64,000 bases of DNA from Podarcis filfolensis (Eukaryota), in NCBI GenBank assembly GCA_964270895.1, contig OZ185437.1; one strand, written 5' to 3'. Positions 12,221 through 63,576 of the stretch are shown piece by piece. The stretch's first letter is position 1; each line of letters begins with the position of its first letter. The position numbers and the translations under genes were made by a program. The notes below the pieces were generated by a model. The model made no database searches. It saw only the letters and a list, made by a program, of their open reading frames with translations, and was not told where the DNA came from.

Positions 12221-12391
12221 ATCATTAGTCAGAAAAATCAATTATCCGAAAGTCAAGAAAAAGCTGTAAACCTCAAAAAGGATTTGACAGAGATGCAAGA
12301 ATGGATGACTCAGGCCGAAGAAGAATATTTGGAGAGAGATTTTGAATACAAGAGTCCAGATGAGCTGGAAAATGCTGTGGATGAAATGAAG
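12221..12391 (+). CDS. UTRN: UTRN exon (ex26 paralog), 171 nt: [57 protein letters not shown]
   Basis: Acceptor ctgctag, donor GTGAGA; close to human utrophin. Confidence 0.97.
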
Positions 12392-16435: not shown

Positions 16436-17529
16436 TGATATAAATTGTATATGCAAGTCTTGGTGATTGCACTGACAAAGTAATCAAATAATTAATATGG
16501 ACACCTCCTAACTTCCTCTAATTTTGAAACAGATTTTCTAAGTTCCCAAGCATACTAGCAGGTTGGACTAAAGTTCATTGTTACAAATCCAGACTGATAC
16601 AGCAGGATCTTTTGAGCTTCAGCTGTGTGAAAGCATGTGAAGCAGAGTTAGACAGCAGGTAGCAGCTAGCAGTGAAAAGGAGCAAAAATGATTCTCCGTA
16701 CACTTTTTATGTTGATTGGAAACTGGGCCAAGAGGATGGGAGTTTTCCATCTTTTCAATTAATTTAACCACATGAGTGAAGGACAAAGACTATAATCTAT
16801 CTGGGAAGGGGAATTGTGCATCTGGGACCCCTGCTTCTTCAGCAGTTCTTCACTTAAGTCACCTTTGACGCACTTCAGCACTGGCTTTCACCTTTGTTTT
16901 GACTCCATGGATATTGTATTCTTCATGCAGGTAACATTATGTTGACAGTGTGATGTTTCCTTTTAATCTTAGCAACATCCAGGATGCCAGTCTCACACAG
17001 CAGTTAGCAAAATCTAGCAAAACATTCAGTACTGCTTGCACAGAAATGACAGGCGTCTATATATACATCCATCATGACTACTCTTCTGTGTGTTTGCTAA
17101 AGTTGCTGGTTCTGCAGGCCTAGCAGGGTACAGGTTAACAAGTGCTGTCAGGTGCGCACCAGCATGATGTTCAAACAGTGGTGCTCAGACAACATAACAG
17201 GTTACAGGTGTGTTTCTGGGCAAAATTATGAGTTCTCACTTTGTCTTAAATGCATTGGGTCCTGGATATTTCAGGGCGAAACTCTCCATAGCTTGAGATC
17301 AGCTGAGGAGGATCTGCTTCAGGTCCCATCATTGCTGCAGGTCAGATTGGCTTCAACAAGAAGCAGAACCTTGTTGGTTGTTGTCCTGGAGCTACTCAAT
17401 GCACTTCCATGAGATGTGTTTGGTGTTTGGCAGGCAGGTTAAAATAATTGTTTCCACATGCTTTCAGATACAGGCAACTCACATTTTATGTGAGGATTTG
17501 GTTCTGGGGTCCACACATAAACATGTAAA

Positions 17530-25982: not shown

Positions 25983-27228
25983 TCTGTTCTTCTAGGATAA
26001 GTTAGAGTTTAGTAATATAAGCCTTTTTGTTGGCTGTTGCTCAAAGAAAATTATTTAAAATGTTGAAATTAGCTATTAGATCTGTAACCACTATACAAAA
26101 CCGCATTGGAGGAGCTAATCTCTATAATTCCACAGCAGCAACACTTAATATTTGCTATCTCTTACATGATAAATTCCCTCAGTGATGGATTAAAGTGGTT
26201 AAAATAGCTATATAAAGATATTTTTTTTTACCTATTTAAAAAATCAACCAAGTAGCTAACTACACAAATACCATAATTTGTTCCAAATTTCTCCCCAATA
26301 CTTAGTTCTGAGCATATATTTAAGCATATATTGTGTCTATGCTTCTTTTACTGCTTTTTCCCAAGCTGGCATGGATAATTTAAAACCTTAAACTATCTTT
26401 TAAATTTGATTGCCTTATTATAGACATTTTTAAAAAAAATCTTTTCTCTAAAAGCTGAATTGTGCCAGCCAAAAAGAGGCGTATTAGATCCAAGACTCAC
26501 CAATGTGTTTCATTTTCCATAACGTAATACAGTTCTTGGCTTTTTGAATTTAATTGCTTGTTTTAATTATTGATTGCTATTTTAGAGAATGTCATGGTTA
26601 GTCAATTATTTGCCTAATTGAGTGCAAAAAGTCATTAGCCTACAAGGAGGAGTATTGTGTTCTGAGGATTGATGTTAAAAATGGAACAGTATAATTTCTT
26701 GTCGTGCAAGGAAACTGCACAAATCCTTCTTATGTTAAAATGGCTACAAATAATTGTGATCTGAGGACCTTTTTACTATCTGTATACAACATACTTCAAT
26801 ATGATTAGTAGTATTTAAATGTTTCAGTGTAATGTATTTGAAATGTTGCAATATCCTCTGTGCTCCACAGTGATTTAGAGAAAAGGCACTACTTTATTAA
26901 TTAACAAGTGCTTGCGCACATACTATTATACAAAAATGTATATTATAGTGGGAAGAATTACATAAGGTTCCCTCCACTTCATGAAAAGTACATGCACACA
27001 TGCAGACAAAAAGTAGTTTGAATTGCTCCATAATAGATAGATATATAGTTCCCCACATGCAGAACAAGAAACTTTATGAAATAACAAATGGAACTGGAAC
27101 ATGGAGTAATTGCATAATAAAATAAATGGCAGAATCTAATAAAATCAAATTTGATAAAGGCAAGAGGAAGATATAAGTTGTCTTAAAAATTACAACTTCA
27201 TTTCCCAACAGTAGCTAATTTCAGGTAG

Positions 27229-27721
27229 CAGGGGCTGCCCAAGACATTTTGGCACCTGAGAGAAACCACAAAATGACATCCCTCTTCCCACTAGACCATA
27301 TAACACCGGTCTTGAAAGACCTACACTGTCTCCCAGTACGTTTCCGAGCACAATTCAAAGTGTTGGTGCTGACCTTTAAAGCCCTAAACGGCCTCGGTCC
27401 AGTATACTTGAAGGAGCGTCTCCACCTCCATCGTTCTGCCCGGACACTGAGGTCCATCGCCGAGGGCCTTCTGGTGGTTCCCTCGCTCCGAGAAGCCAAG
27501 TTACAGGGAACCAGGCAGAGGTAGTGGCACCCGCCCTGTGGAACGCCCTCCCACCAGATGTCAAAGAGAAAAATAACTACCAAACTTTTAGAAGACATCT
27601 GAAGGCAGCCCTGTTTAGGGAAGCTTTTAATGTTTAATAGGTTATTGTAATTTAGTGTTCTGTTGGAAGCCACCCAGAGTGGCTGGGGAAACCCAGCCAG
27701 ATGGGCGGGGTAGAAATAACA

Positions 27722-33238: not shown

Positions 33239-33376
33239 TTGGATGAAGAGAGGGCTCAAATTGAGGATGTTCTACAAAAAGGTGAAAAGCTACTGCAACA
33301 GCCAATGGAAGAGAGCAGGCATGAGAGAATTCGTTTGCAGCTTCTGCTTCTGCAGACCAGGCAAAGCAGCGCTAAG
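33239..33376 (+). CDS. UTRN: UTRN exon (ex39 paralog), 138 nt: [46 protein letters not shown]
   Basis: Acceptor cattttag, donor GTGAAG; 46 codons, as in human. Confidence 0.95.
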
Positions 33377-34481
33377 GTGAAGCTATTGTGTTCTCCCTCC
33401 ACCCACCCATCCAATAGGATAGACATCTGCAGTATAGTTTCCTCTCTCCCAAGCAACATGTGCCTGCCTGCATCAGAAAACTCTGTAACTCTCATGCACG
33501 CACCCATGCCCAACTTCTGATTTTTCATTTCATTGACACAGATGTCTTTTCAACCCAGGTGCACATGGCTTTCCACTTCTGATATATTGGAATCTTTTCT
33601 CTCGTCACCCTGAAACTAGGATGGGTAAATGGATGAATTGGTCATTAAATATTTTAGTTCTGCCCAAAACCCAGTACTCTCTGCACACAGTTATTCTTCT
33701 GTATGAATTTGACCTTCTGAGTCAGCTCTTCACCCACTTTCAATGGAAGAAAGAAAATATGCTTATAGGTGCATGTGCTATTGAAACTGGGTGAGGGATC
33801 GGGGCCAATTAGATCTGCAATTGCCTCCATATTAAAAAAAATGTCAATATTGGGTAAAATTGTTCAGCTCTTTTATTCTTGTCTGTGACTGATGAAAGGC
33901 AGAGCCCTGTTTCTAATTCCCTGTCATCTTCCCCAACGGAACCAGAGAGTTCCATATTAGGCCCATAGAAACTGAGTAGGCGTTAGCCCCCGCCTCCAGC
34001 CACAACTTAATTTACACCAGCATGGTGATAAGGGAAATGGGGGTGGGACAGAAGAGGGGTTGCATTTTTTTTTAATTTCTGGATTACTGATGTACCATTC
34101 AGCATTTGAGAAGCCTCTTCTTCAACCTGGCAAGATCCTGTTTTGCCTCAGATGCCTTCAAGGAACCCCACCTCCAGCCGAGGATTGGGGAACCATTTAA
34201 ATTTGGTTCCCTGGGAAATAGGCAAATTGATCCTTGGTAGAATTATTTTTCAAATAAGGCAATCTGTGTTAAGACAGAAATTGGTATTGTGGCAGCATGC
34301 AATATCAACCCGGCTCCCTGGCAGATGTTGTTTGGGGTCGTAATTGTCAACAAACGCTTTTGCCATTTCAGCTTGCACTTCTTTTGTAGATTCTAAACAT
34401 CTGTGATTGAGCATACACAACTGCTTTTCTTCTGCTTCTGTCAACCATTTGCTTTATATTCCCTTCATTCTTTGCTTATAG

Positions 34482-34634
34482 GAACTTAGGTCATTACAAA
34501 GGAGACAGGTGGTGGAGCTCTCCCCTTCATTCTCCCAATATAAGACAGAACAAGACAGTCATTTGCACTGGCTCAATGAGACAGATGGAAGCCTTTCTGG
34601 AACAGAGGAAGCAGAAGAGGAGGGGAGGTTGCAG
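34482..34634 (+). CDS. UTRN: Extra UTRN exon homologous to dystrophin exon 40, 153 nt: ELRSLQRRQVVELSPSFSQYKTEQDSHLHWLNETDGSLSGTEEAEEEGRLQ
   Basis: Polypyrimidine tract plus tag acceptor, donor CAG/GTAGAT, phase 0-0, no stop codon. Aligns without gaps to recalled DMD ex40 (DLRSQRRKKALEISHQWYQYKRQADDLLKCLDDIEKKLASLPEPRDERKIK, 153 nt). Confidence 0.82.
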
Positions 34635-37600
34635 GTAGATCTTATTTATTGTGAAAAAAATATTTTAAAAACTTTCCCCTTAAGTTACACTAACAGACCA
34701 TCTAGCCAATATACTTTCACTACCAGTACTGTAACTGTAACTACAGGTTGGGGTTTTTTAAAAAATTTTTTTGTCAATAATGTCATCATATTTTTGACAA
34801 AATAAAATTGTCAATAAATTCTAAAATGGACCACTGCACAAAATTTACCCTTTGGTAAAGGACGCTGATAGAGGATCTGTCCATCTAGCTGGAGTTTAAT
34901 GTTTTAGACCCCACTAAGGAAGAGGACACATTCCTATAATTGGGCTACAAGAACTTGCCATCTCTTTTTGAAATGTTACATTGGCCATTAACACATTCAG
35001 TTGTGAGTGGATCCAGCAATGTTATGACTGAGTTTTGAGGCTAGATCTGTACAGGGTAGTGAAAGATCAGATTCGAAAGCATATTTACTTACATTCAGGT
35101 TGCTGCATTTCAGATAAATTATTTATCAATAGCATGTGAAATCTTGAAAGAAGTGGATCTTCTTTATTTACTATATTTTCAGTCTTGTTTTTCAGATAAT
35201 TGTCTGCTAATGTGTCTCATATTAAAGAGAGAGAGGGAGGGGGAAAAGAGAGAGAGAATGAGAGAAAGACCCTGTCATTTGGTTTATAAACTACGGTAAA
35301 AAGACAGGAGAAAAGGGAAAAGGTGAAGGAGGGAGATTAGTTATTCAAAGCCAGAACAAAGTGGTGAGCTGTGAGAGGGCATTTATATCCAGTTCAGGCA
35401 AGCTTGTTCTTCATCTGCTTGAATAGCAATTGATGACTTTGGTCCCTTTGGCCAATGGATGAGGCCAGAGTGTTCTTTCTTCTTACTTTAGCAGTCCCAG
35501 GGGCTAAACACAGCTAAAGCTGAGTATTTTTTCAGGCAGGATGGGGAGAAGTGAGCTCTTTGTAGCTGCTTCTTATTTGGCTGATGGTAAGGGCCAGCTG
35601 GTCTCCCTGTTGCCTCAATGTTTCTTTCGGGAGGTAGTGACCCTAGGTTTCCTGGCTGTTGGCAAAAGCTGGAGTGTGCTACTCTTCAATTCTCTGGCCT
35701 CAGGACAACTGGGGTATCTATGAATGGGAATCTGTGATTATTTTTATCTCTGCTCATTAGCCGTCTCTTCTTAAGGCTTTTCCTGGGCCTTTCAACTTTT
35801 CCTTGTGTTCAGATTTTGCTCACAGGTGAGCATGACCAAAGGAGAAAGGGTCATATCCTGCTATGTTTCTGGGCAGTTTCTTGAACCTTGGTAAACCCTG
35901 GGTCAAGTGAACCCCAATCCGATTTTGATTTGACCCCTTATGATTTTATTTTGGATGTGTTTAAATTGGATGTATTAAAATCTGCTGTTTAGTCAAATAT
36001 TTGTGAGAATTTTATTGAGTGCAGTACTGTGATACCGACTTCAGAAAGCTTGTCTGTTTCAATTATTCATACATACAAAGCTTTTCATTTTCCATTTCTA
36101 ATGCGTCCACTTTTCTCAAATATTTAGTCTGTCATAAGAATTGTTGTTATATTTTATATAATAGTGAGGAGTCGTCTGAAGCAGTAAGTAATTTTTTGGA
36201 CAAGCTTGTGCATTAGGCAATCTGTCAAATACTTTTGCATTTCTGGTTATGGGACTTTATAATTAAATGAATCAATCTCTTTATGACTCTCCTATAACTT
36301 TAAAGCCCAGAGCCAATTATTGAGGAGAACATAGAATGTGAAAGACTCAAAATCAAGCTTATGCAGCATAGAATAATGATGCCTAAAGTCCTCCCAATTT
36401 AGTGCCCTGTTTTGTCAGCAGCTACCTCCATTTCTTCCCATGGAGCTAACAGCAGCTTTAAAGTCAGGGAATTTAGGTTGGGATGATAGTGTGAGGAGAA
36501 TGGGTGACAATTATTTTCTTACAAAAAGGGCTGAAATTGGTGAATTAATATGAGAGTGAAGGCGGCCAGCAACAGGTTTGGATCAGTTTTACCCCACAAA
36601 AAATGTATTTAGGAAAAGTACCAGTTGTTGCTTTGTAGCAGCAGATCATCTCCCTTCTGCACACTGGACTTCACATAGGAAACCTCCTGTTAAGAATTGA
36701 TGTCAGCATGCAAATATCAGACAGGGTAGGAGCCTGATTGTCAGCCCCATTCTCCTTTGTACAGGTAGTGCTCAAGTAATGAAGAGAAATCAAAAAGATG
36801 GATTTGCATGTGTAGAGCTGCACCAAGTATTAATCATTGGTTTGCGGTTTATATTTTAAAAATATTTTATATGAATTGCCCCAGTCTATTTTTCTGGCTC
36901 AAATGCCCTTTGTTTGTGTAGGATCTGGAAAATCATAGTTGCTGTCTTCTCTGAATTGAACCTTGAACATTAGGGTGCTGAGGTTTGAGGTTTTCATTAT
37001 TTTTTGGCATACTGTAGGTGACAAAACAGCAATTGATCAATAGTACTGCAACTTGTTTAACATTTCTCTGTTGGAGACCTTGTTGATGACCTTCACTCTG
37101 CGCTGGACTCTGATGAAGATGCAATTCTGTATATGGTGGTTCAGAAAAGGAATAAACCATATTTTTGTGCCTGGTTTTGATTGGCTTCATCTTTTAGTGA
37201 TTAGCCAGTTGGGGATACTGTATTATCTAGCTCATTGCATCTGGTATAAGGTTGGCTTGGTAACCATTCATACACCAAACTGAGCTCCTTGGAGGAAGGG
37301 CAGAATACAACTTTGATGAACAGAAGCAGATAATTGCTGTTCCCTTTTGAATGAACTGCCTTTGGGGATCAGATCAAGGTCTGTCTCGTCCTGTGTTATG
37401 CTTCCAGCAGCAGTTAACCAGATGTCTCTGGAAGCAAGGCATGAAGGTGACCATTTACTGGTTGTTTATCAACACCAGCTTATGGTGCTTCAATTCAGAA
37501 CCCTAATCTCTATGAATTTGTCTAATTGATTCTTTTAAACTAGGGTTGGGGAACTCATGGTTTTCCAGAAGTTGATGGGGCTCAGGCACAGCACTTCAAA

Positions 37601-38260
37601 GTACTTTTATTTCCCACATTCCTCCTGATGCTTTCTGCTTTAAAGAAGGAGAGAGAAGCTCCCCAAACAATGATATGCTCTGTATGGAATAAAGTTACAA
37701 GACTGATTATATGTTTTAACCTTGTTGTATGGCTCCTTTCCTATTTTGAGAAAGCTCTTGCTATCTGTAGGAAAACAAGCTTTTTAGTGTTCTCTTTTGA
37801 CTTAGCCTACTGTGTCTATAGACATAAAATGTCAGAAGTCATCATGGGCATGCATTAGCCTCCATGCCAACTGAGAATTATAAAAATGAATGTCCACATT
37901 TCGAGAACCTGGGAAAAGACTTTCTGTTAATTTAGGGTGGGCTATCTCCACCCTTTCCCCATAACTGGAGCTGATAAATTGACTTGCTTGACTGGAGTAT
38001 ATTTGTATTGGTATATAGGGTGATTCATTTTAAAGAAAGTAAATTAAGTTATTGGTGTACCTGCAATGGACAAAGTAGATATACTTCCTTCTAATTATAA
38101 CAAGGAGTCACATGGCAGGGATTTTAGTTTTGGGGATAGGATTTCAATTTTAAAAACTTGATTTTATCTGGTATATTTTAATAGTTTATTTTTCAGTTCA
38201 GTACTTTTTAAAAAGGCCTTAATCTGCATTGAACCTGAAAGATAGGACATAAAGCAAATA

Positions 38261-38480
38261 CAGTGGACCTTCGGATTACGTTACCTTTGGGTAACGTAAC
38301 TTTTGGGTTGCGAACGTGGCAAACCCGGAAGTGTATACTTCCGGGTTTCGCCGTGCGTACATGCGCAGAAGCGCTCTGCACGCTTTACGCATGTGTAGAA
38401 GTGGCGCCTCTAGATGCGGACTTTTTGGGGTACGTATGGACCCCCAGAACGAATTAAATTCGTATCTGGAGGGTCCACTG
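38261..38480. mobile_element. Tc1/mariner MITE, 220 bp
   Basis: Ends CAGTGGACC / GGTCCACTG; TA TSDs; internal palindrome AAACCCGGAAGT...ACTTCCGGGTTT. Confidence 0.88.
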
Positions 38481-38558
38481 TACAAATAAATGAAATTTGT
38501 TTTTATCTTATACTGATGTTATTTTAAAAGAGCTAAGCTTTAGTTTATTTTTCTTTAG

Positions 38559-38744
38559 GCAGTCTTGCAGAAGATTCAAGGTCCCCTCTCATCAACAATG
38601 AGGGCATCTCCATTCCCTGCAGAATATCTGGTTGAAATTAACAAGATTTTGCTGGCTATAGCTGATGCTGAGCTCTTGCTGAATGCTCCAGAACTTCATT
38701 CTGGTGTCTATGAAGATTTTTCTACTCAGGAAGATTCATTAAAG
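38559..38744 (+). CDS. UTRN: UTRN exon (ex42 paralog), 186 nt: AVLQKIQGPLSSTMRASPFPAEYLVEINKILL...FSTQEDSLK
   Basis: Acceptor ttctttag, donor GTACTA; YLVEINKILL matches human. Another in-frame AG lies at +12. Confidence 0.92.
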
Positions 38745-39560: not shown

Positions 39561-39681
39561 CTTGCTATGTTTACTAGATAGTATCATGTCTCCAAGAGCA
39601 GGGGGTGGATTGTAGGCTCAGGGAAATTAAATATATTTGATACTTCTCCATTCAGGAGCTGTGTAAGTGTGTGTGTGATTG

Positions 39682-39682
<1 letters not shown>

Positions 39683-39720
<38 letters not shown>
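39683..39720. repeat. (TG)n microsatellite
   Basis: Seen directly. Confidence 0.98.
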
Positions 39721-39724
<4 letters not shown>

Positions 39725-40036
39725 AATTTACTTTTTAAGAATGAAAGTAAGTACATGCTCAGACAAAATAAACAGAAAGCATTGTGTTTGGGCTCTTAAG
39801 CTCATTGGATACAAATCTATTTTTACCCTTAGTAAGATATTATAGAAGAACTCATTGTGGTTTAAAAAATAATTAGGGAAAGAAACCTATACTAACAGTG
39901 TTAAAATTACGTTGTTCATGCTTTTTGCAATCCAATCAAAGGGTTCAATTTGTCAAGTTGGCAGTCATCCTTGAGGGTATGCTAATACTTCCTTGTAGAG
40001 CACTTGAACAGGATTTTTGTCTTTCTATGCTTACAG

Positions 40037-44424: not shown

Positions 44425-45711
44425 GTATCTATCTGATCATGGTTTGTTAAGGTGGTTTGTTAAGAACTTGCTAACATTTTGATTTGGGTCTGGAAACTAA
44501 TTGTCAGCCAGTGTGAATGCTTCAAAGTGACATGCACAAACATGGGCCAAAAGCTGTTAATAAGTGGATTTCTGCATTCTGTACTAGCCGAAATTTCCAA
44601 ACAGTCTTCAGGCAGCCACATCTAACCCAGCCCATAAACTACCAACACATGAGTGACAGTTGCCAGGTCTCCATTTCCAGTAGCAGGCATAGGGGTTGTA
44701 CCAGCCAAAGCTGATGGAAGACATGCTGGACCACAAATGGATGGAAACCTAATGAAAACCCTTGACTCTCAAATTATTAATGAAGGCGCTTCATACATAT
44801 GCATATACTGAATTTTACTGAACATATGCATTTTACTGAAAGTCTTATCCCCAATCCCCTGGTAAATAAATAAATGTTAAATAACAACACTTTACTGTTC
44901 TCCTTTTAAAAAAAACAAACCTAATTTTTTAAACAACATAACTTAAGGCATGAACCTTCATGATCTTACGTAGACAGAAGTAGTCACACTTACATTTGGC
45001 GCATTTTAATTTGCTATAACTTCATATAATTTCATTTAGCTGCAAAAAGCATTGATAGATCACTGAGTATTGTTTTATTATTTTTAGAGTGTATCTGATT
45101 TTTATAAAAAAAAATTTTGAGCTGTATTTTTTTTTTATAGCACAGTATATTGTATAGAACAGAGAGATCTCTTTTGACAGTTGATGCTTTTTTCTGGTTG
45201 TTAGTGATATGTGAAAGTTTGAGCCTGACTTTCCCTGACTTCCCTCAATTTCCTTGGGTTTCCTACCATATCTGCAGATCATGGGAACACTGTCCTTAAT
45301 TAGCCTAGCTGAAATCTTAGTAAGGCTACAGAGAACAGGCAGCATATCTATTCTGAGACAAACTAATGCAGTGTTTTCCCTTCATCCCTACCCCACAAAC
45401 CAAAATCTGTAGGCAGTATTTCCCCTTTTATCTCAAAGGCATACATGCATACTATGTGAGGAATGCTTAGCCTTCATACTGATTTGATTTCAACATCATG
45501 TTCTTGTACTGTTTGCCTTTGGTAGATTGATATTCATGAATATATTAGCTTACTCTTAATAACAAGTGCCTAATCATTCACTTAAACAACAGTGATTTTT
45601 TATTTTATTTTTTAAACGAGCAATGTGTGCCCAAGTCATTGTTTCAGGCTACACGTCAATGTCATATTGGGTAAGCAACAAAATTCAGCTTGGTTTTTAT
45701 ATTTGTGACAG

Positions 45712-45887
45712 GAACTTGAAGAGGGAGTCAGCAGCCATCAGACCAGCTTTTCGACATTGAACAGAACAGGAGAAGGAATTGTACAGAAGCTCTCTACTAC
45801 AGATGGAAGCTTCCTGAAGGAGAAACTAGCAGGGTTAAATAATCGCTGGAAAGCCATCACTGCTGAAGTTATGGAAAGACAACAGAG
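45712..45887 (+). CDS. UTRN: UTRN exon (ex45 paralog), 176 nt: [58 protein letters not shown]
   Basis: Acceptor gtgacag, donor GTAACT; translated by hand; phase 0 to 2. Confidence 0.96.
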
Positions 45888-46825
45888 GTAACTGGTTCAG
45901 TCAGGTTTTGGGATATCTTAGGAGAAGCATTGGGAACAAGTTTCTCTAGAAGCTCCAAATGACATTGCGTATTTCCTATTTGGTTGAAACGTCCATGCCC
46001 TGAATCTGAAAGGTCCCTCAAGGCTACTTTGAAACAATTAGTGATAATGATGCTGTTTTTAATGTGCATACTCGTTCCATTTCCCCTTGCTCTGTTTTAG
46101 GAAATTGCTCTTTCATTTCTTTTAATATACTCTTTGGGTATATGAGTGCTACATTCATGTTTTGGAATTGCATTTTATCTATTGATGATATTTTCACATT
46201 GCCTTTGGTCCTTCTTAGTATATAGGTGGTTAGCAAGGCTAACCCTCCCCCCAGATTTCCTGCAAAAAGGAAAAAAGGGCATTCAAGATGCAGCTAGATT
46301 AGTCTGTCTGAAGTTGAATTATTAGTTGTGTTGCCATTTTGAAATGTACATTTAAGTTAATATCTATTCCCCGCCCCAATCAAGATAAACAAAATGCTAG
46401 TTTACCACAGAGGCATAATGTACCAATGTTATAGTCATTCCCACCACCAGTCTAGCTTTATGCAGTGCATACATAATTTTAAAAATACTTGCTTGGTATG
46501 ATTGAAGACAGTGTGCAAATTCTTTCAATTTCTACACAGAATATGAAATATTGCTGGGAATTGTTTAAAATTAAATACATCTTTTTAGGCCTAAGGCAAC
46601 CCAGGGAACACTTTAAGCATTTCTTTACCTGAAGTCACATTGCTGGAGAGAATGTGGAAATGTCACATGAAGAACTTTGTACACTTGAATTGATTTTTTA
46701 AATTCAACTTTGTAGTTTGTTATATTAGTAAGCTGTAGATGGAGTGTGTTTTCTTATTGCTTTTACCTTTCTGTATTTATATTGATGTTCTTGTTTTATA
46801 TTCCACTTTGGGGTTTGCGCCTTAG

Positions 46826-46961
46826 ACTGAAAGGAGAGAATCAACCATTACTAGACTTCACAAGAAACCTAGATGAATTTAGTTGCTGGCTGGAAAACAT
46901 AGAAAATGCACAGGAAGAGAAGCCTACAATCAGCCGTGAAGAAAATTTGAAGGAATTAATG
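46826..46961 (+). CDS. UTRN: UTRN exon (ex46 paralog), 136 nt, GC donor: LKGENQPLLDFTRNLDEFSCWLENIENAQEEKPTISREENLKELM
   Basis: Acceptor gccttag; 45 codons, as in human. Frame is kept only with the donor ATG/GCAAGT. Confidence 0.88.
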
Positions 46962-48377
46962 GCAAGTTAGATAGAAATGATTGCATACTTTATTTGAATT
47001 TATTCCTCCTTATTCCTACTGGTGCTACTGAATAACTAATTAATTTGAAAGGATTCTTTAGTTCACAAATAATTGTTGTGCATTAGGTTGAGATGAATAA
47101 TTTGATACTAAGAGAGCCAATGCTACTGCTGCCTAAATGGACCCAGTCGAAGTGTACGGAACACATCACACATAACCCAAGTGCAGCGCTGGGTCTGTTC
47201 GTTGCCTGTGGCAGGACACACTGAGCAGAACTGCACTCCTGGGACATCCCAACTGGTGGAAAGGAAGAGGCGTTTTTTTGCAAAATCCTCCTATCTCTTG
47301 CAGTTCCCTGAAAATCTGCTCTGCAGAATTGGAGAATCCTCTGGAACAGTGTGGGAAGGAGGAATAAGCGAAAAACATTTCCTCCTCCTTGTGCCAGAGG
47401 AGCCTCTGGTGAATCAAAGTCCCTTTTATGAACAGAATCCTTGCATGAAATTATTGCTAAAAGTACAAAGAGCTGCAATCTAGCACACTGATTTGGGGCT
47501 TCAAGAGCACAAAACTAAGCACTGGACCAATAATCTCAATCCAGCAGACTGGGTGTGCAACGAATTTCCACTGCTGCCTATGAAAGGAAAGTGACCGTGT
47601 TAGTTTTAATTTAAACGTCAATACTAAAACTTTTCATTAATATTCCCAAAGTCAGTAAATAACTTGTATTTAGAACCTGTGGAATCAGCAGGGCACACAG
47701 AGGCCTATGTTATTGTGCATTACACAAGTCCTCCACAAATTAACCTAGTTTTTAAATTGTTTTTATTTACTTACATTTATATCCTGGTATTTTTCTATTA
47801 TGCAACCCAAGGCAGCATACATGTGATTCCCAGGAAGTTACGCATTCAGGAACTCTCCAGACCTAGTGAAGTGGTGGCCTCATGTCTTCCGATTGTAACC
47901 TGGAAATAGGGTAGCAAGTCAAGTAAAATCCTATGATCTTCTTAAACCATGCAGAATTTGAAAAATGTTCATTTCCCCCCTCTAGTTTTGCATAATTTGT
48001 TGTTCTTTAAAAAGTATTTTGGATAATTTATTCTGCTTTTGCTTCTCATAGAGAGGTGCCTGAAGTCCAGCTCTTAGCAACACTTGTTGCTTCTCCTCTG
48101 GCACTAGGCATTGTCCATATCTTTTTTTAAAAAAACTAGTCAATGCCTACCTCCTGTGACTTTTCTGTCTAAGGACTCAGCTATACAGCTGCAAATAAAA
48201 CATTTTGAATGTGTTGTAAAGTGCAATATACAACTGTGGCATTAGATGGCAACCATGAGCTATAGCAAATTCAATGCATTTTTCAAAACAATTTTTTTTT
48301 TTAAAAAAAAAGCATTTTCACAACGATTTTAACAGGTCTGTAGATTCCACCAAAAGTGCTTTCTTTAATCGCTTTAG

Positions 48378-48527
48378 GGCTTGATTGAGGAGATGGACAT
48401 GCAAGGAGAAAAACTTAAGTGGCTAAACAAGAATGAACCTGAGCTGATTTCAAATAAAAGCATTGGAGCTCGAGAGAGAGAGAATATTTCTGATAGACTG
48501 AGGACCCTGAATATTAAGTGGAAGAAG
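48378..48527 (+). CDS. UTRN: UTRN exon (ex47 paralog), 150 nt: GLIEEMDMQGEKLKWLNKNEPELISNKSIGARERENISDRLRTLNIKWKK
   Basis: Acceptor gctttag, donor GTATGG; phase 0-0. Confidence 0.94.
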
Positions 48528-49924
48528 GTATGGATTGCAATATGGATTCCTTAAAATCAGCAAGTATAAAATGTATTCTTTTTAATTGAGTTCCTGCCAC
48601 ATACATATGAATAATCTTGTCGGGGGAGGCATGATTGGACAAGTTAGTGTAAAGAAGTGTTTTGTGTCGCAGGCGGCCTTCACATGCTATGGTAAACCAC
48701 AGTTACTCACCTTGAATGCATGGGTTTCTCCTGCTTCACTCCTCCTTTGGCGTGAGTGTGAGCAACCAGCCATGATTCCTACTTAGCGTTCTATCCGAAC
48801 TGGAGATTGTGGTTTATTTTGCTCAGAGAAAATTACAGCTGGTAAGCCAAGAACAAACCTTGGCTTAAATTCCTTGGTTTGTTTGGAGTTAAACAAACTA
48901 CCATCCCCGCATCAGATTTAACACTAAACTAGGGATTGTGGTTTGCTGCTCCCACTCATGCTAGGGGACAAGTGAAGAAGGGTCCACCTGTACATTCAAA
49001 ATAAACCATTAACTGTGGTTTCCAGTGAGATGTGAACATAGCCATATTGTTAAACCTATGCATGGAAATGCTTTTCTTTCTTAATATTCCACATCAGGAG
49101 TAACCAGTGTGGTGCACTCCACATGTTGGACTATAGTTCCAGTGATCCCTGACAAGCGGCTATGTTGGCTGGGGTTTATGGCAACTGCAGAGCAACAACA
49201 TCTGGAATGTAACCACAATTAACTAGCCTGGTCTAGATCAATAGCTTTCTTTTGTTTGAGGCAGCATGCATTGTATCAGAAGCAGAATTCCTAAATGTGA
49301 CCCTGGAATACTTTTCACAAGTGGGAAGTAAACATCCTTCATGCTTTATGAATTTTAATTTAATTTATTATACTTGTGTAGTAAGCTCAAAGCAACGTAC
49401 AGAGGGCTCCATGTTTTCTTCCCAGAAGGAAACACCCGCTGAGCACTCCCAGACCACTCACTGAGCTTGTAGAAAAGTAGGGGAACTAGCATGGCATAGA
49501 AAAAAGTTCCACCCTAGTCCTCACTTTATATCCATTTCTATTATTTTGCTTCTTCGATTCTTTTAATTGGATCAACAATCAAACATGAAATCTGTTGTCT
49601 GTATTCTGAAGAGGTGGGCTCCCAGCAGGAATGTACTAAGTGGCAGCTTAAAATGATCAGAATTGTGGCTGGGGTGGGTGTGTTTCCTAAAAGTATACAT
49701 TTCAAGCGCCAAAGGCCAGGTTAAAGGGGTGCATCTTCAGCATTCAGTGGAAACTATATAGTGAAGATACCAGATGCAGCTCTGTGGGGAGAGAGTTCCA
49801 CAACTGCTACAGAGAATGTCCTCTCCTGGAACACATGCATCCCTGAGCTTCTGGGGGTGGTGTAACTGAACGTAACACCCAAGGGAGTCTTCCAGGGATG
49901 GATGTGGTATTTCATATATTTGTG

Positions 49925-50200
49925 GCCTAAGCCATCAGTTCAAACACTAGCATGACTTTGAATTGGGTCCAGACATGAACTGACAACAAATGCATCTGCT
50001 TTAAATAAAACAGGGTTTGTATGAATGAATGTAATGCCATCCAATATTTTGCTGCTGTATTAGGACCAGTTGGAGTTTCTAAGACACTGTCAAGCCCCAC
50101 ACAGAGCGCATTGCAATAATGCAGTCTGGAAGTTACCAAGGCATGGGGTAGAGTGGCCAAGTCAGCTGAGTCCAAAAGGGACCTTAGCTGGCACCTGAGC
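49925..50200 (-). mobile_element. Decayed L2 fragment
   Basis: Translates to DLATLPHALVTSRLHYCNALCVGL. Confidence 0.75.
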
Positions 50201-50507
50201 CTCCAGTCACAGTGTTAGATCCAGGAAAACCCCAAAGCTCATTCCAGGGAAGTACAATCCGGTCCAGCACAGACTGTCCCCGCCTCCCAGTTATGATAAC
50301 TGAGGACACCTAACACTTCCGCTTGGATTCACAATCATTCCTCCTCATGGTATAACTCACTTGTATTAACGTATATTGTTAATATCGTACTTCCCCAAAC
50401 AGTAGCTGCTTTTGGGTACTATATTTCAGTCTTTGAATGACTATTGCAACTCTTTCCTCCTCCCCTAGTTCTTTGTTGCACTGAACAACACAATGTTTGT
50501 TGTCATA

Positions 50508-50644
50508 NNNNNNNNNNNNNNNNNNNNNNNNNNNNNNNNNNNNNNNNNNNNNNNNNNNNNNNNNNNNNNNNNNNNNNNNNNNNNNNNNNNNNNNNNNNNN
50601 NNNNNNNNNNNNNNNNNNNNNNNNNNNNNNNNNNNNNNNNNNNN
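50508..50644. other. Assembly gap (137 N)
   Basis: Seen directly. Confidence 0.99.
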
Positions 50645-50919
50645 GGCTCTATACTGAGCTCTTCATTTTGCACCTTTGCCACCCATTCTTAGTAAAGAAT
50701 CCCAAATGTGCAACTTACATTCAAATGCACCCCAGACCCGTTTTAGGGGCTAAATGCAAACCCCTTCATCTCTAAACTCTTGGTCTTGGGGGGTTAATGG
50801 ATTTTGTGCTCAGCTTTCTATAGTAGTATCGCTTTATCTGTATAATGCTAAAAATGTTAATCCTCAGTTCTTGACATGAAAAGGTTTTTGTAATGTGACG
50901 TTTTTCTCTGCCATATTAG

Positions 50920-51004
50920 GTGTTCAGAGAAGCACCCAACAGAGCGAGAGAACTGGAGGCCCATGTTCATCAGCTTCATCTGGTGCCACAGACAATGCCA
51001 CCTG
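50920..51004 (+). CDS. UTRN: UTRN hinge exon, 85 nt: VFREAPNRARELEAHVHQLHLVPQTMPP(G)
   Basis: Acceptor atattag, donor CTG/GTGAGC. Phase 0 to 1 bridges the flanking exons. Similar to human ICREVPTTLKE and to the start of DMD ex48. Confidence 0.85.
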
Positions 51005-51790
51005 GTGAGCTCCGAAAAGAGAACGTGCTTCTTTTACAGGACAGTTTTCAGAATTCTTTGTCATCTCATTTTTTGATCTTTAAGGCCATGAACGTTTTAG
51101 ATTCTGTTTCTGTTTAAGGGCATGGCACTGAGTCACTAAGACCATGCGTCCAAGTGTATTGAAAGGAAATTGGCTTCTAATACATTTTATGAACAAAAGA
51201 AAGTACATTTGCAGACTTCAAAATTAACAGAAATTAATCCCTTTCACCATTTGAAGTTCTGTACTGACATATTCTTCCATCAGTATGATTCAGAGGATCA
51301 ACAATGAATTCTTGCTTCTGACTCAATAGCACTTATTTCACTGGCAATAAATGTTTGAATTTGTTTCTTCCTGGAACTTAATCAGATAGTAAACTAGGAT
51401 CAGCTGCAGGTTGTGACTTTTCCTGTGGGTGACAGCTTAACGATGTGTAGATTTTGACCACACATTATTTGAATGTTCCTAAACTGCCTGGGTATTGGGA
51501 TTGGCAGTGAATTTCTCACACCTCACCAGATCTGTCAGTGATGAGTATGTCATCAACATTTTCACATCATTCTGGACCAGGAAGGCAGTAATCCAGATGG
51601 TGTTTGGAACAGAAGGCTAACCCTTTAAGGTTTTTAACTTGTTTAGATGGGGTTGGAGAAAAAATACAGAGGATGTTTTTAAAATGGCAAGAATTGCTAT
51701 TTTGTTGCTTGTTTTTCCAACTGCAAATAAATTCAAGTCCCATACTAAGTGCAATTTGAAATACCAAGTGAATTGTGTTGTCTTGTTTAG

Positions 51791-52005
51791 GTTACCCTGT
51801 TCTCCAAAAGATGGTGCTAGTGTCCTCTGCCTCTGAAAATGTTGCTCAAACTCAGCAGGCTTTGGAAATTTCTGCACCTGCTGATCTGGATAAAACTACA
51901 ACAGAACTGGCTGACTGGTTGGCACTGATTGACCAGATGCTCAAGTCCAACATAGTTACTGTGGGAAATGCTGAAGAAATCAATCGGACAATTGCACGCA
52001 TGAAA
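51791..52005 (+). CDS. UTRN: UTRN exon (ex51 paralog), 215 nt: [16 protein letters not shown]...[20 protein letters not shown]...ARMK
   Basis: Acceptor tgtttag, donor GTATGT; phase 1 to 0. Confidence 0.96.
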
Positions 52006-54228: not shown

Positions 54229-54538
54229 CGTTAGGGGAAAGGCGACCAATTTTTATTAACAGTGACTACTGAAGGGATGCAGGGGCCAGAGCTTGCAATG
54301 GCCTGGGTGGAGACTGACATAATCTGGCAAGTCATGGTTGGAGGCAGGATGGAATATGGAGGAGACCTGAAATTTTACCACATATCAGAATCCAGCATAG
54401 AGAAAAGCAAGCTATATGTGGGAGTGGTGGGAGCTTCATTGCCTCTTTATACATTTGAACTAATATTGGCTTGGAGGAGGAGAGACATTTAGTGGTAATT
54501 ATGAATATGCATTTATGCTTGTAGCATAAATGTGTGTT

Positions 54539-54540
<2 letters not shown>

Positions 54541-54574
<34 letters not shown>
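54541..54574. repeat. (AG)n microsatellite
   Basis: Seen directly. Confidence 0.98.
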
Positions 54575-54576
<2 letters not shown>

Positions 54577-54792
54577 TCTAGCAAAGGGAATCCATGTGTA
54601 GAAATGAACTTGTCCTTCTGTGAAGATGAATGGGTTAGTTTGTGAGAGCTGTGCGTAACAGCTTCCCAAGGGCTCAGGGTTGGCTTCAGTGATTTTTGGA
54701 TGGTTACTCTGAGTAACAGAAAGATTGAGGATAATGTAATAGCCACAAAATGCTTTTTGTTTGGTTACATGTTCCTCCTTTGTCCTTTTCAG

Positions 54793-62100: not shown

Positions 62101-62222
62101 TTTCCCGTTTTAGACAAACCGGTCATTCTTGGGCTTTTTTTGTATTGTGTTTTTTATGTTGTGCATCTCTTTGATATTTTATGTGAGTGGGTGGTGTGGG
62201 TGCATGTGTGAGTGAGTGTGTG

Positions 62223-62225
<3 letters not shown>

Positions 62226-62290
<65 letters not shown>
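62226..62290. repeat. Compound (CT)n(CA)n microsatellite
   Basis: Seen directly. Confidence 0.98.
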
Positions 62291-62294
<4 letters not shown>

Positions 62295-63576
62295 CATAGG
62301 TATGTTCCATACTGGCACAGGTTCCACTTCACCTTATATGGTGCTTCCACACGTTGGCTATTAGGAATCACAAGAAAATATCTTACTGCAGAACAGTAAT
62401 TATATTAAGATGCTTTGGTAGGAAATCTGGGTATGTATTTTTTGCTGAAAAGATCTTGTGGGAAGTAACTACAATTTTGTTGGAGCACTCCAGCATAAAA
62501 TTTAATTTGTGGAAGTGTGTGGATTCTGCTGTCGGTAGCTGCACACACTAAATCCTCTGGATATTAATGTTCTGTGATGGTATAATTCTTCCATATAGAA
62601 CTGTATTTTGTGTTGGCTCAAAACTGAAGATGGGGAAAATACCTCGATTATTATGTCTAGAGGTCCTAAGCCCCATGCATTTATCCTTTAAATATGAGCA
62701 AAGTTGTAGCTGCCTTGAAAAATGTTCTTAACTATTTATTTTAAACATATAATTGAAATGTGATCTATTCATTCTTTGTGTTTCTAAAAAAAAAAAAAAT
62801 CATGCACACAAAGTTCAACCATTGTGCCAGCAATCACCAATACTTTAAAATAACGTATTATTCAATGATATAATACTTGAAGTAGATATTTGGAAAGGAT
62901 GCTTTTGGTACTATAGCTCTGCAATTTGGCACTTGCTTATTGCAGATTTTTGGCAGGAAAAAATATATAGATTTGGCACCTTCTTAGCCTACCAATAGAT
63001 TATCACCAAAACAATCTTCAAAAATTAAATCCTGTGAGTTGATCATGTTGCCTGAATTCATTTCAGTTTGGAAAGATGAAGGTCAGTCAAAGTCAAAAGT
63101 GTTGCAAATGTTTACAGAATATTGAGGTGTGTAATAGGTTGCAATATGTGAAATATGAAAGAAACTCTCAAATAAATTATGATTCTATTAAAGGAGTAGT
63201 TGCAATCTCCCAAGTAAGTGATAAAATAAAGAACATCTGTTCCACTTTTTAACAGCATTGTGGTCTGTACACTTTAGGGAGTTGTTTTCATTCATTGCGA
63301 AAAAACTATTTGCTTGCTTCACAACGTCCTGAAAGTGTGCAGTTAAGTTCCTCACACTTGCAACATTGCAATATGGTTACAGCAAGAAGAGGAGTATTTA
63401 GTATATTGAATCATTTTCATAAATTGTAGCATCTTGCAAGTAAATGAATACGCATAGAAATTCCAGAACCTGTGGCATAATGCACCAAAACAAATGTGCA
63501 CCAACTGCTCTGTCTTAGATTTAATGATTCCTTTTTGCAATTTTTCTGAGGTCAGTGTTATTTTTTTCCCCTACAG

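Follow-up and report, generated by a model that had tools for sequence, protein, structure and literature searches.

We propose that positions 34482-34634 of the window, by which we mean the whole 64,000-nucleotide stretch of Podarcis filfolensis DNA analysed here, form a genuine utrophin coding exon that is carried in the full-length mRNA models of close relatives, shares ancestry with exon 40 of the dystrophin gene (DMD) and would contribute to a hinge-like linker in the protein. We put the probability of this reading at about 0.88. It draws on near-identity to annotated lacertid utrophins, a gapless and position-specific match to dystrophin, splice signals typical of the gene and structural modelling of the encoded segment.

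The utrophin locus and its exon 40

On sequence comparison, the window is the middle of a lacertid UTRN gene. By tblastn, residues ~899-2540 of Lacerta agilis utrophin X2 are colinear with it, and the clean exon matches are 92-100% identical. The exon-39 counterpart is 97.8% identical to Lacerta agilis utrophin 1797-1842, and exact copies of its peptide occur in Podarcis and Zootoca utrophins. None of the listed lacertid utrophins is identical to the window across all exons, nor does any contain the exact exon-40 peptide. The comparison proteins came from an HMMER search of the whole library that used a conserved exon nearby (12221-12391) as query, which led to a cyprinid utrophin and to dystrophin of the snake Pituophis catenifer, and from three word-indexed searches whose queries included cyprinid, gar and Rhineura utrophins. 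The cyprinid query returned teleosts only and the useful taxa came from the gar- and Rhineura-based searches; among the utrophin matches listed (the best 120 per list) there were no mammals and no crocodilians.

DMD exons 39, 40, 43 and 45 measure 138, 153, 173 and 176 nt, and exons of the window have these same sizes. Such agreement would also be expected if the locus were dystrophin itself, in which case the exon would merely be DMD exon 40. However, the window exons are only 35-79% identical to the snake dystrophin, far from the values reached with lacertid utrophin, and an exon-41 counterpart is absent from the window. We therefore rejected a dystrophin locus, to which we give next to no chance, and treat the gene as utrophin.

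The preliminary description had reported a 153-nt, stop-free, phase 0-0 exon with a polypyrimidine tract, a TAG acceptor and a CAG/GTAGAT donor, placed between the paralogs of exons 39 and 42, and both the sequence and the peptide are exactly as it claimed (Table 1). Translation of the + strand gives 51 codons and no stops. The TAG that contains the acceptor is itself an in-frame stop, and the open frame begins exactly at 34482. At the other end the frame runs beyond the donor, up to 34802, so that the 3' end of the exon is not set by the open frame alone; it was set by the junction ...GRLQ/AVLQ... of lacertid proteins together with a gene-wide junction search. Scored by a crude consensus count, which is not a calibrated measure of splice strength, the splice sites of exon 40 are average or better for this utrophin gene and no weaker than those of its constitutive neighbours: the acceptor tract is 80% pyrimidine, among the highest values for the 31 exons mapped in the window, and the donor agrees with 7 of the 9 positions of MAG/GTRAGT, equal to the median for these exons (n = 31). 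The counterparts of exons 39, 40 and 42 all have lengths divisible by three, and skipping exon 40 keeps the frame.

Table 1. Coordinates of the exon-40 counterpart and its surroundings in the window
Feature	Position	Strand	Details
Utrophin coding exon, DMD exon 39 counterpart (upstream)	33239-33376	+	138 nt; donor AAG/GTGAAG
Polypyrimidine tract and AG acceptor of exon-40 counterpart	34459-34481	+	AG at 34480-34481
Utrophin coding exon, orthologous to DMD exon 40 by sequence comparison	34482-34634	+	153 nt, phase 0-0
Donor GTAGAT of exon-40 counterpart	34635-34640	+	CAG/GTAGAT
Intron, expected site of exon-41 counterpart	34635-38558	+	3.9 kb
Utrophin coding exon, DMD exon 42 counterpart (downstream)	38559-38744	+	186 nt

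Comparison with dystrophin argues that 34482-34634 is orthologous to DMD exon 40, as had been proposed. Against the 3652-residue snake dystrophin, the best local alignment of the exon-40 peptide is gapless over 51 of 51 residues at 1835-1885 (BLASTP, 27.3 bits, E 1e-4), directly after the match of exon 39, and shuffling the peptide 1000 times never gave a score as high. With a profile of 26 utrophin exon-40 peptides, the same protein scored 33.3 bits at residues 1836-1885 and at most 3.6 bits elsewhere. This specificity for one segment of dystrophin indicates that the similarity is positional and not a generic likeness among spectrin repeats. The canonical helix-A Trp that had been pointed out in the lizard peptide is present as well: it is residue 30 of the exon peptide, and across 38 utrophins at least 90% of its column is Trp, making it nearly invariant in this family.

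We then compared the exon with annotated proteins of other squamates. The exon-40 peptide is identical at 50 of 51 residues to residues 1843-1893 of Lacerta agilis utrophin X2. Its counterpart is found in all nine lacertid RefSeq isoforms examined that span the region, eight of them full-length and the ninth a 2229-aa P. lilfordi model (Lacerta agilis X1 and X2, Podarcis muralis X2, X3 and X4, P. raffonei X1 and X5, Zootoca vivipara X2, and P. lilfordi X2), and these peptides differ from that of the window at 1-5 of 51 residues. Gene models of about 15 other squamates also contain it, with Rhineura, Sceloporus, Anolis, Pogona, Tiliqua, Lerista, Hemicordylus, four geckos, Python, Vipera and Pantherophis among them. 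The preliminary description had allowed that the exon might already be recorded in non-mammalian utrophins, and so be real without being novel; public gene models bear this out, and exon 40 of non-mammalian utrophin is already annotated in the closest relatives of this lizard and in dozens of vertebrates. From the gene models of these relatives, which are themselves predictions, we infer that exon 40 is included in P. filfolensis mRNA.

Conservation, measured here on protein and not as dN/dS, amounts among squamates to 64% identity to Lacerta for exon 40, compared to 63%, 74% and 80% for exons 38, 39 and 42, respectively. The N-terminal half of exon 40 is 70% identical versus 57% for the C-terminal half. 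The conserved leading Glu, the Pro of an LSP motif, the Trp and the Glu of a WLNE motif would indicate continued purifying selection. These data bear on whether the segment could be a decaying pseudo-exon or a chance open frame outside the mature mRNA, as in mammals. A 51-codon open frame is unremarkable by itself in DNA of 40% GC, and such frames are not rare in AT-rich DNA; the frame also extends past the donor, and Pfam does not recognize the exon peptide alone. What exceeds chance, however, is the homology: the near-identity to the annotated Lacerta protein, the specific match to snake dystrophin at 1835-1885, a frame and length preserved over long-diverged squamates, and key residues conserved from sharks to lizards, to which good splice signals are added. 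We thus rejected a chance frame or dead exon, whose probability we consider very small, in favour of a coding exon.

Several other features of the window were recorded along the way. In the exon that encodes the hinge, Lacerta agilis utrophin maps to 50920-51006 only (29 residues, 100% identical), and the junction search placed its donor tentatively at 51024, at a poor site (AAC/gtgctt); a run of 137 Ns at 50508-50644, an assembly gap or masked sequence, lies in the intron just upstream. Open frames at 27219-27634 (+) and 17101-17409 (+) are intronic, and one of their translations has a stretch ending ...WNALPPDVKEKNNYQTFRRHLKAALFREAFNV. We take these frames to resemble interspersed repeats of reptiles and birds, and they are likely to be transposon-derived copies in utrophin introns. 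Microsatellites of the (GT)n and (GA)n types occur in introns at 39680-39740, 54500-54580 and 62190-62300 and translate as CVCVCV and SLSLSL/ERERER.

Exons 40 and 41 across vertebrates

To compare this part of the rod across vertebrates, we measured in each protein model the number of residues encoded by exons 39 through 42. Snake dystrophin, the reference, has 223. Utrophin models with both exon 40 and exon 41 span 212-220 residues and include those of sharks, gar (X3), bowfin, sterlet, paddlefish, all examined amphibians (caecilians, axolotl and seven frogs) and most turtle models. Spans of 151-161 residues, with exon 40 only, are seen in squamates, birds, lungfish, bichir and one Mauremys reevesii isoform, the missing exon 41 of birds, lungfish and bichir being read from gene models only. 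Neither exon is present in models spanning 103-111 residues, which come from some ratites, peafowl, turtles, Varanus, Naja and Pseudonaja and from one Podarcis. Teleost utrophin models have no exon 41 and carry a shortened, divergent remnant of exon 40. The extra 57-59 residues of the long utrophins are the exon-41 counterpart, the profile of which matches snake dystrophin at 1889-1942 with 33.2 bits, adjoining the exon-40 match. For gar, the UniProt entry W5NH22 lacks the latter half of exon 40 and the greater part of exon 41 and spans 141 residues from exon 39 to exon 42, versus 212 in RefSeq X3, which has both exons; gene models in this region therefore differ by annotation pipeline.

No relic of exon 41 was detectable in the 3.9-kb intron downstream of exon 40, either by tblastn with 14 exon-41 peptides or with the utrophin exon-41 profile in six frames. 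The best tblastn match in the intron, at 37631-37696 (+), covers 22 aa, of which 9 are identical to the middle of the turtle exon-41 peptide (E 0.1). The best E of the profile over the six-frame window was 1; the intron frame 37544-37855, which contains this match, had E 55. We therefore rejected it as an exon-41 relic; despite the right intron and strand, the resemblance is probably due to chance.

We considered whether exon 40 might be a regulated cassette, such that lizard tissues make both the longer rod and a mammal-like rod in which exon 39 is joined to exon 42. Exon 40 and both its neighbours are phase 0-0, so that skipping would be frame-neutral, and skipped forms are annotated in models of Struthio (X5 and X6), Dromaius (X6), Pavo, Chelydra and Chrysemys. 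Among squamates, exon 40 is missing from the UniProt-listed Varanus and Pseudonaja models, from the Naja genome annotation and from one Podarcis muralis model, with exon-precise junctions in Varanus and Naja, and Mauremys reevesii has isoforms both with and without exon 41. However, all nine lacertid RefSeq isoforms examined that span the region include exon 40 and none is 51 residues shorter; the sole lacertid model that skips it, the UniProt-listed Podarcis entry, has an imprecise junction and looks like a modelling artefact. The exon-40 splice sites are not weak, and the skipped models of other taxa may stem from projected mammalian proteins. We consider regulated skipping in this lizard unlikely and favour an exon included in the full-length mRNA.

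The distribution of the two exons bears on when repeat 15 was lost. The preliminary description had proposed that it was lost from utrophin stepwise and after the split of sauropsids and mammals, and not at the DMD/UTRN duplication. The last part stands: because exons 40 and 41 are both found in the annotated utrophins of sharks, gar, bowfin, sturgeons, amphibians and turtles, the protein models support the presence of repeat 15 in utrophin after the duplication, so that it would not have been missing from the start. The lizard state, in contrast, does not serve as a step towards the mammalian rod. Since turtles and amphibians keep both exons, the amniote ancestor would have had the whole of repeat 15, and squamates would have lost exon 41 on their own, making the lizard half-repeat a parallel state and no intermediate.

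We suggest the following course of events. In ancestral jawed vertebrates, utrophin would have had all of spectrin repeat 15, with counterparts of exons 40 and 41 coding for it. Since the two exons are phase 0-0, loss of either would leave the frame intact. In squamates exon 41 would have been lost and exon 40 retained, and birds, lungfish, bichir and teleosts, judged by gene models, may have reached a similar state independently. With the gene models at face value and the accepted vertebrate tree, bichir, teleosts, lungfish, squamates, birds and mammals would each have lost exon 41 independently. One may go further and envisage a decay of repeat 15 that was repeated in a fixed order, with exon 41 lost about six times, exon 40 mostly kept under selection, and the half-repeat of squamates and birds co-opted as a new flexible hinge or a binding segment at mid-rod, perhaps skipped in certain tissues. 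This fuller scenario is speculative, and we regard it as possible though rather doubtful.

A related pattern may exist for repeat 19. In protein models we measured the distance between two anchor exons, one exon-45-like (45709-45888) and the other at ~51811-52005 (interval 45888-51832). It is 262 residues in snake dystrophin, 240-253 in the utrophins of sharks and ray-finned fish, teleosts included, 198 in lungfish utrophin and 143-147 in all tetrapod utrophins, those of the lizard's relatives among them. The repeat-19 region thus seems to persist in the utrophins of fish and sharks and to have disappeared on the tetrapod stem. Given the 240-253 residue span, repeats 15 and 19 would both be present in the utrophins of sharks, gar, bowfin and sturgeons, which are 3597-3662 residues long.

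Predicted structure of the half-repeat

By reference to the turtle model and its Pfam Spectrin match, exon 40 encodes the end of helix C of repeat 14 and, from the former repeat 15, helix A and the beginning of helix B. The first ~18 residues of the exon-42 counterpart are a Pro/Gly/Ser-rich linker, after which helix A of the next repeat begins. We modelled the segment with AlphaFold2 for turtle, with exons 40 and 41, and for Lacerta. In the turtle model, the repeat-14 helix enters the first 11 residues of exon 40 and is followed by helices at 231-255, 260-290 and 298-320; block-mean pLDDT is 72-87 in these helices and ~50 in the loop at 291-300, and a low-confidence linker comes after. In the Lacerta model, the repeat-14 helix stops 11 residues into exon 40. 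Residues 225-285, which comprise the remainder of exon 40 and the Pro/Gly/Ser-rich start of exon 42, have pLDDT of 28-45 and consist largely of coil, the one short helix lying at 263-273, and a helix begins at 287 after this low-confidence stretch.

Profile searches gave a similar picture. Pfam Spectrin (PF00435) scores turtle repeat 15 alone at 27.8 bits and repeat 15 of snake dystrophin at 28.9 bits, and finds no match in the Lacerta exon-40 region or on the exon peptide. A Pfam scan of the exon 39, 40 and 42 peptides taken singly likewise gave no matches, because peptides of this size are too short. Overall, lizard exon 40 does not make up a complete spectrin repeat: it has the helix-A Trp, and neither a ~105-residue Pfam unit nor a confident three-helix bundle is found.

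These models suggest how the half-repeat might be accommodated in the rod. Without exon 41, its 51 residues would be unable to complete a three-helix bundle. The first ~11 would prolong the last helix of repeat 14, and the remainder of exon 40, together with the Pro/Gly-rich start of exon 42, would probably form a hinge-like, flexible linker, ~60 residues long, that joins repeats 14 and 16, as read from one AlphaFold2 model with a shallow 38-sequence alignment, where low pLDDT is no proof of disorder. Dystrophin carries a 20-residue insertion between R15 and R16 (PMC2873924), and the half-repeat would thus lengthen a site that already holds an insertion in dystrophin. The more strongly conserved N-terminal half of the exon, with its invariant-like Trp, could be a helix that packs on the neighbouring repeats, and the conserved Glu, Pro, Trp and Glu positions would also be compatible with a helix docking elsewhere.

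Implications and comparison with known rods

In reviews of dystrophin and utrophin, some of them recent and therapy-oriented, the absence of repeats 15 and 19 from utrophin is stated without qualification (PMC10789850), and micro-utrophin designs and functional comparisons such as those of nNOS anchoring and microtubule binding rest on this rod map. The public protein models examined show this arrangement to be derived. Both the repeat-15 and the repeat-19 regions seem to survive in the utrophins of sharks, gar, bowfin and sturgeons; amphibians and turtles retain the whole of repeat 15, and squamates and birds half of it. Evolutionary accounts of the utrophin rod can usefully be corrected on this point, and the natural half- and whole-repeat variants offer material on how the rod tolerates out-of-register deletions. 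A full-text literature search limited to journals outside paywalls found no paper on repeat 15 in non-mammalian utrophin, a result that argues only weakly for the absence of such work. The evolutionary point is perhaps not widely appreciated, yet it can be read from existing models and involves no new kind of element.

The closest known systems are the lacertid utrophins, such as those of Lacerta agilis (XP_032999821.1 and XP_032999820.1), Podarcis muralis (XP_077782050.1), P. raffonei (XP_053238062.1) and Zootoca vivipara (XP_060128712.1), which have the same gene, exon and junctions as the window. Others are the utrophins with a whole repeat 15, those of turtles, amphibians, sturgeons, gar, bowfin and sharks. 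Their exon 40 is clearly homologous to that of the lizard, with ~78% identity between Lacerta and turtles in the N-terminal half, but they add the exon-41 counterpart of 57-59 residues, which the lizard is without. Pituophis catenifer dystrophin X5 resembles the lizard exon at 1835-1885 in its position after exon 39, in its length of 51 residues and in its RR, E-x-S and QYK motifs, although the two are only 24% identical. Dystrophin completes the repeat with exon 41 after exon 40, whereas lizard utrophin does not, and at the helix-A aromatic position utrophins have Trp where the snake dystrophin has Phe. Mammalian utrophin, with 22 repeats, belongs to the same gene family and shares the flanking exons with the lizard gene, but it is described as having no counterpart of dystrophin repeats 15 and 19 and, according to the literature, has neither half of repeat 15 (PMC10789850).
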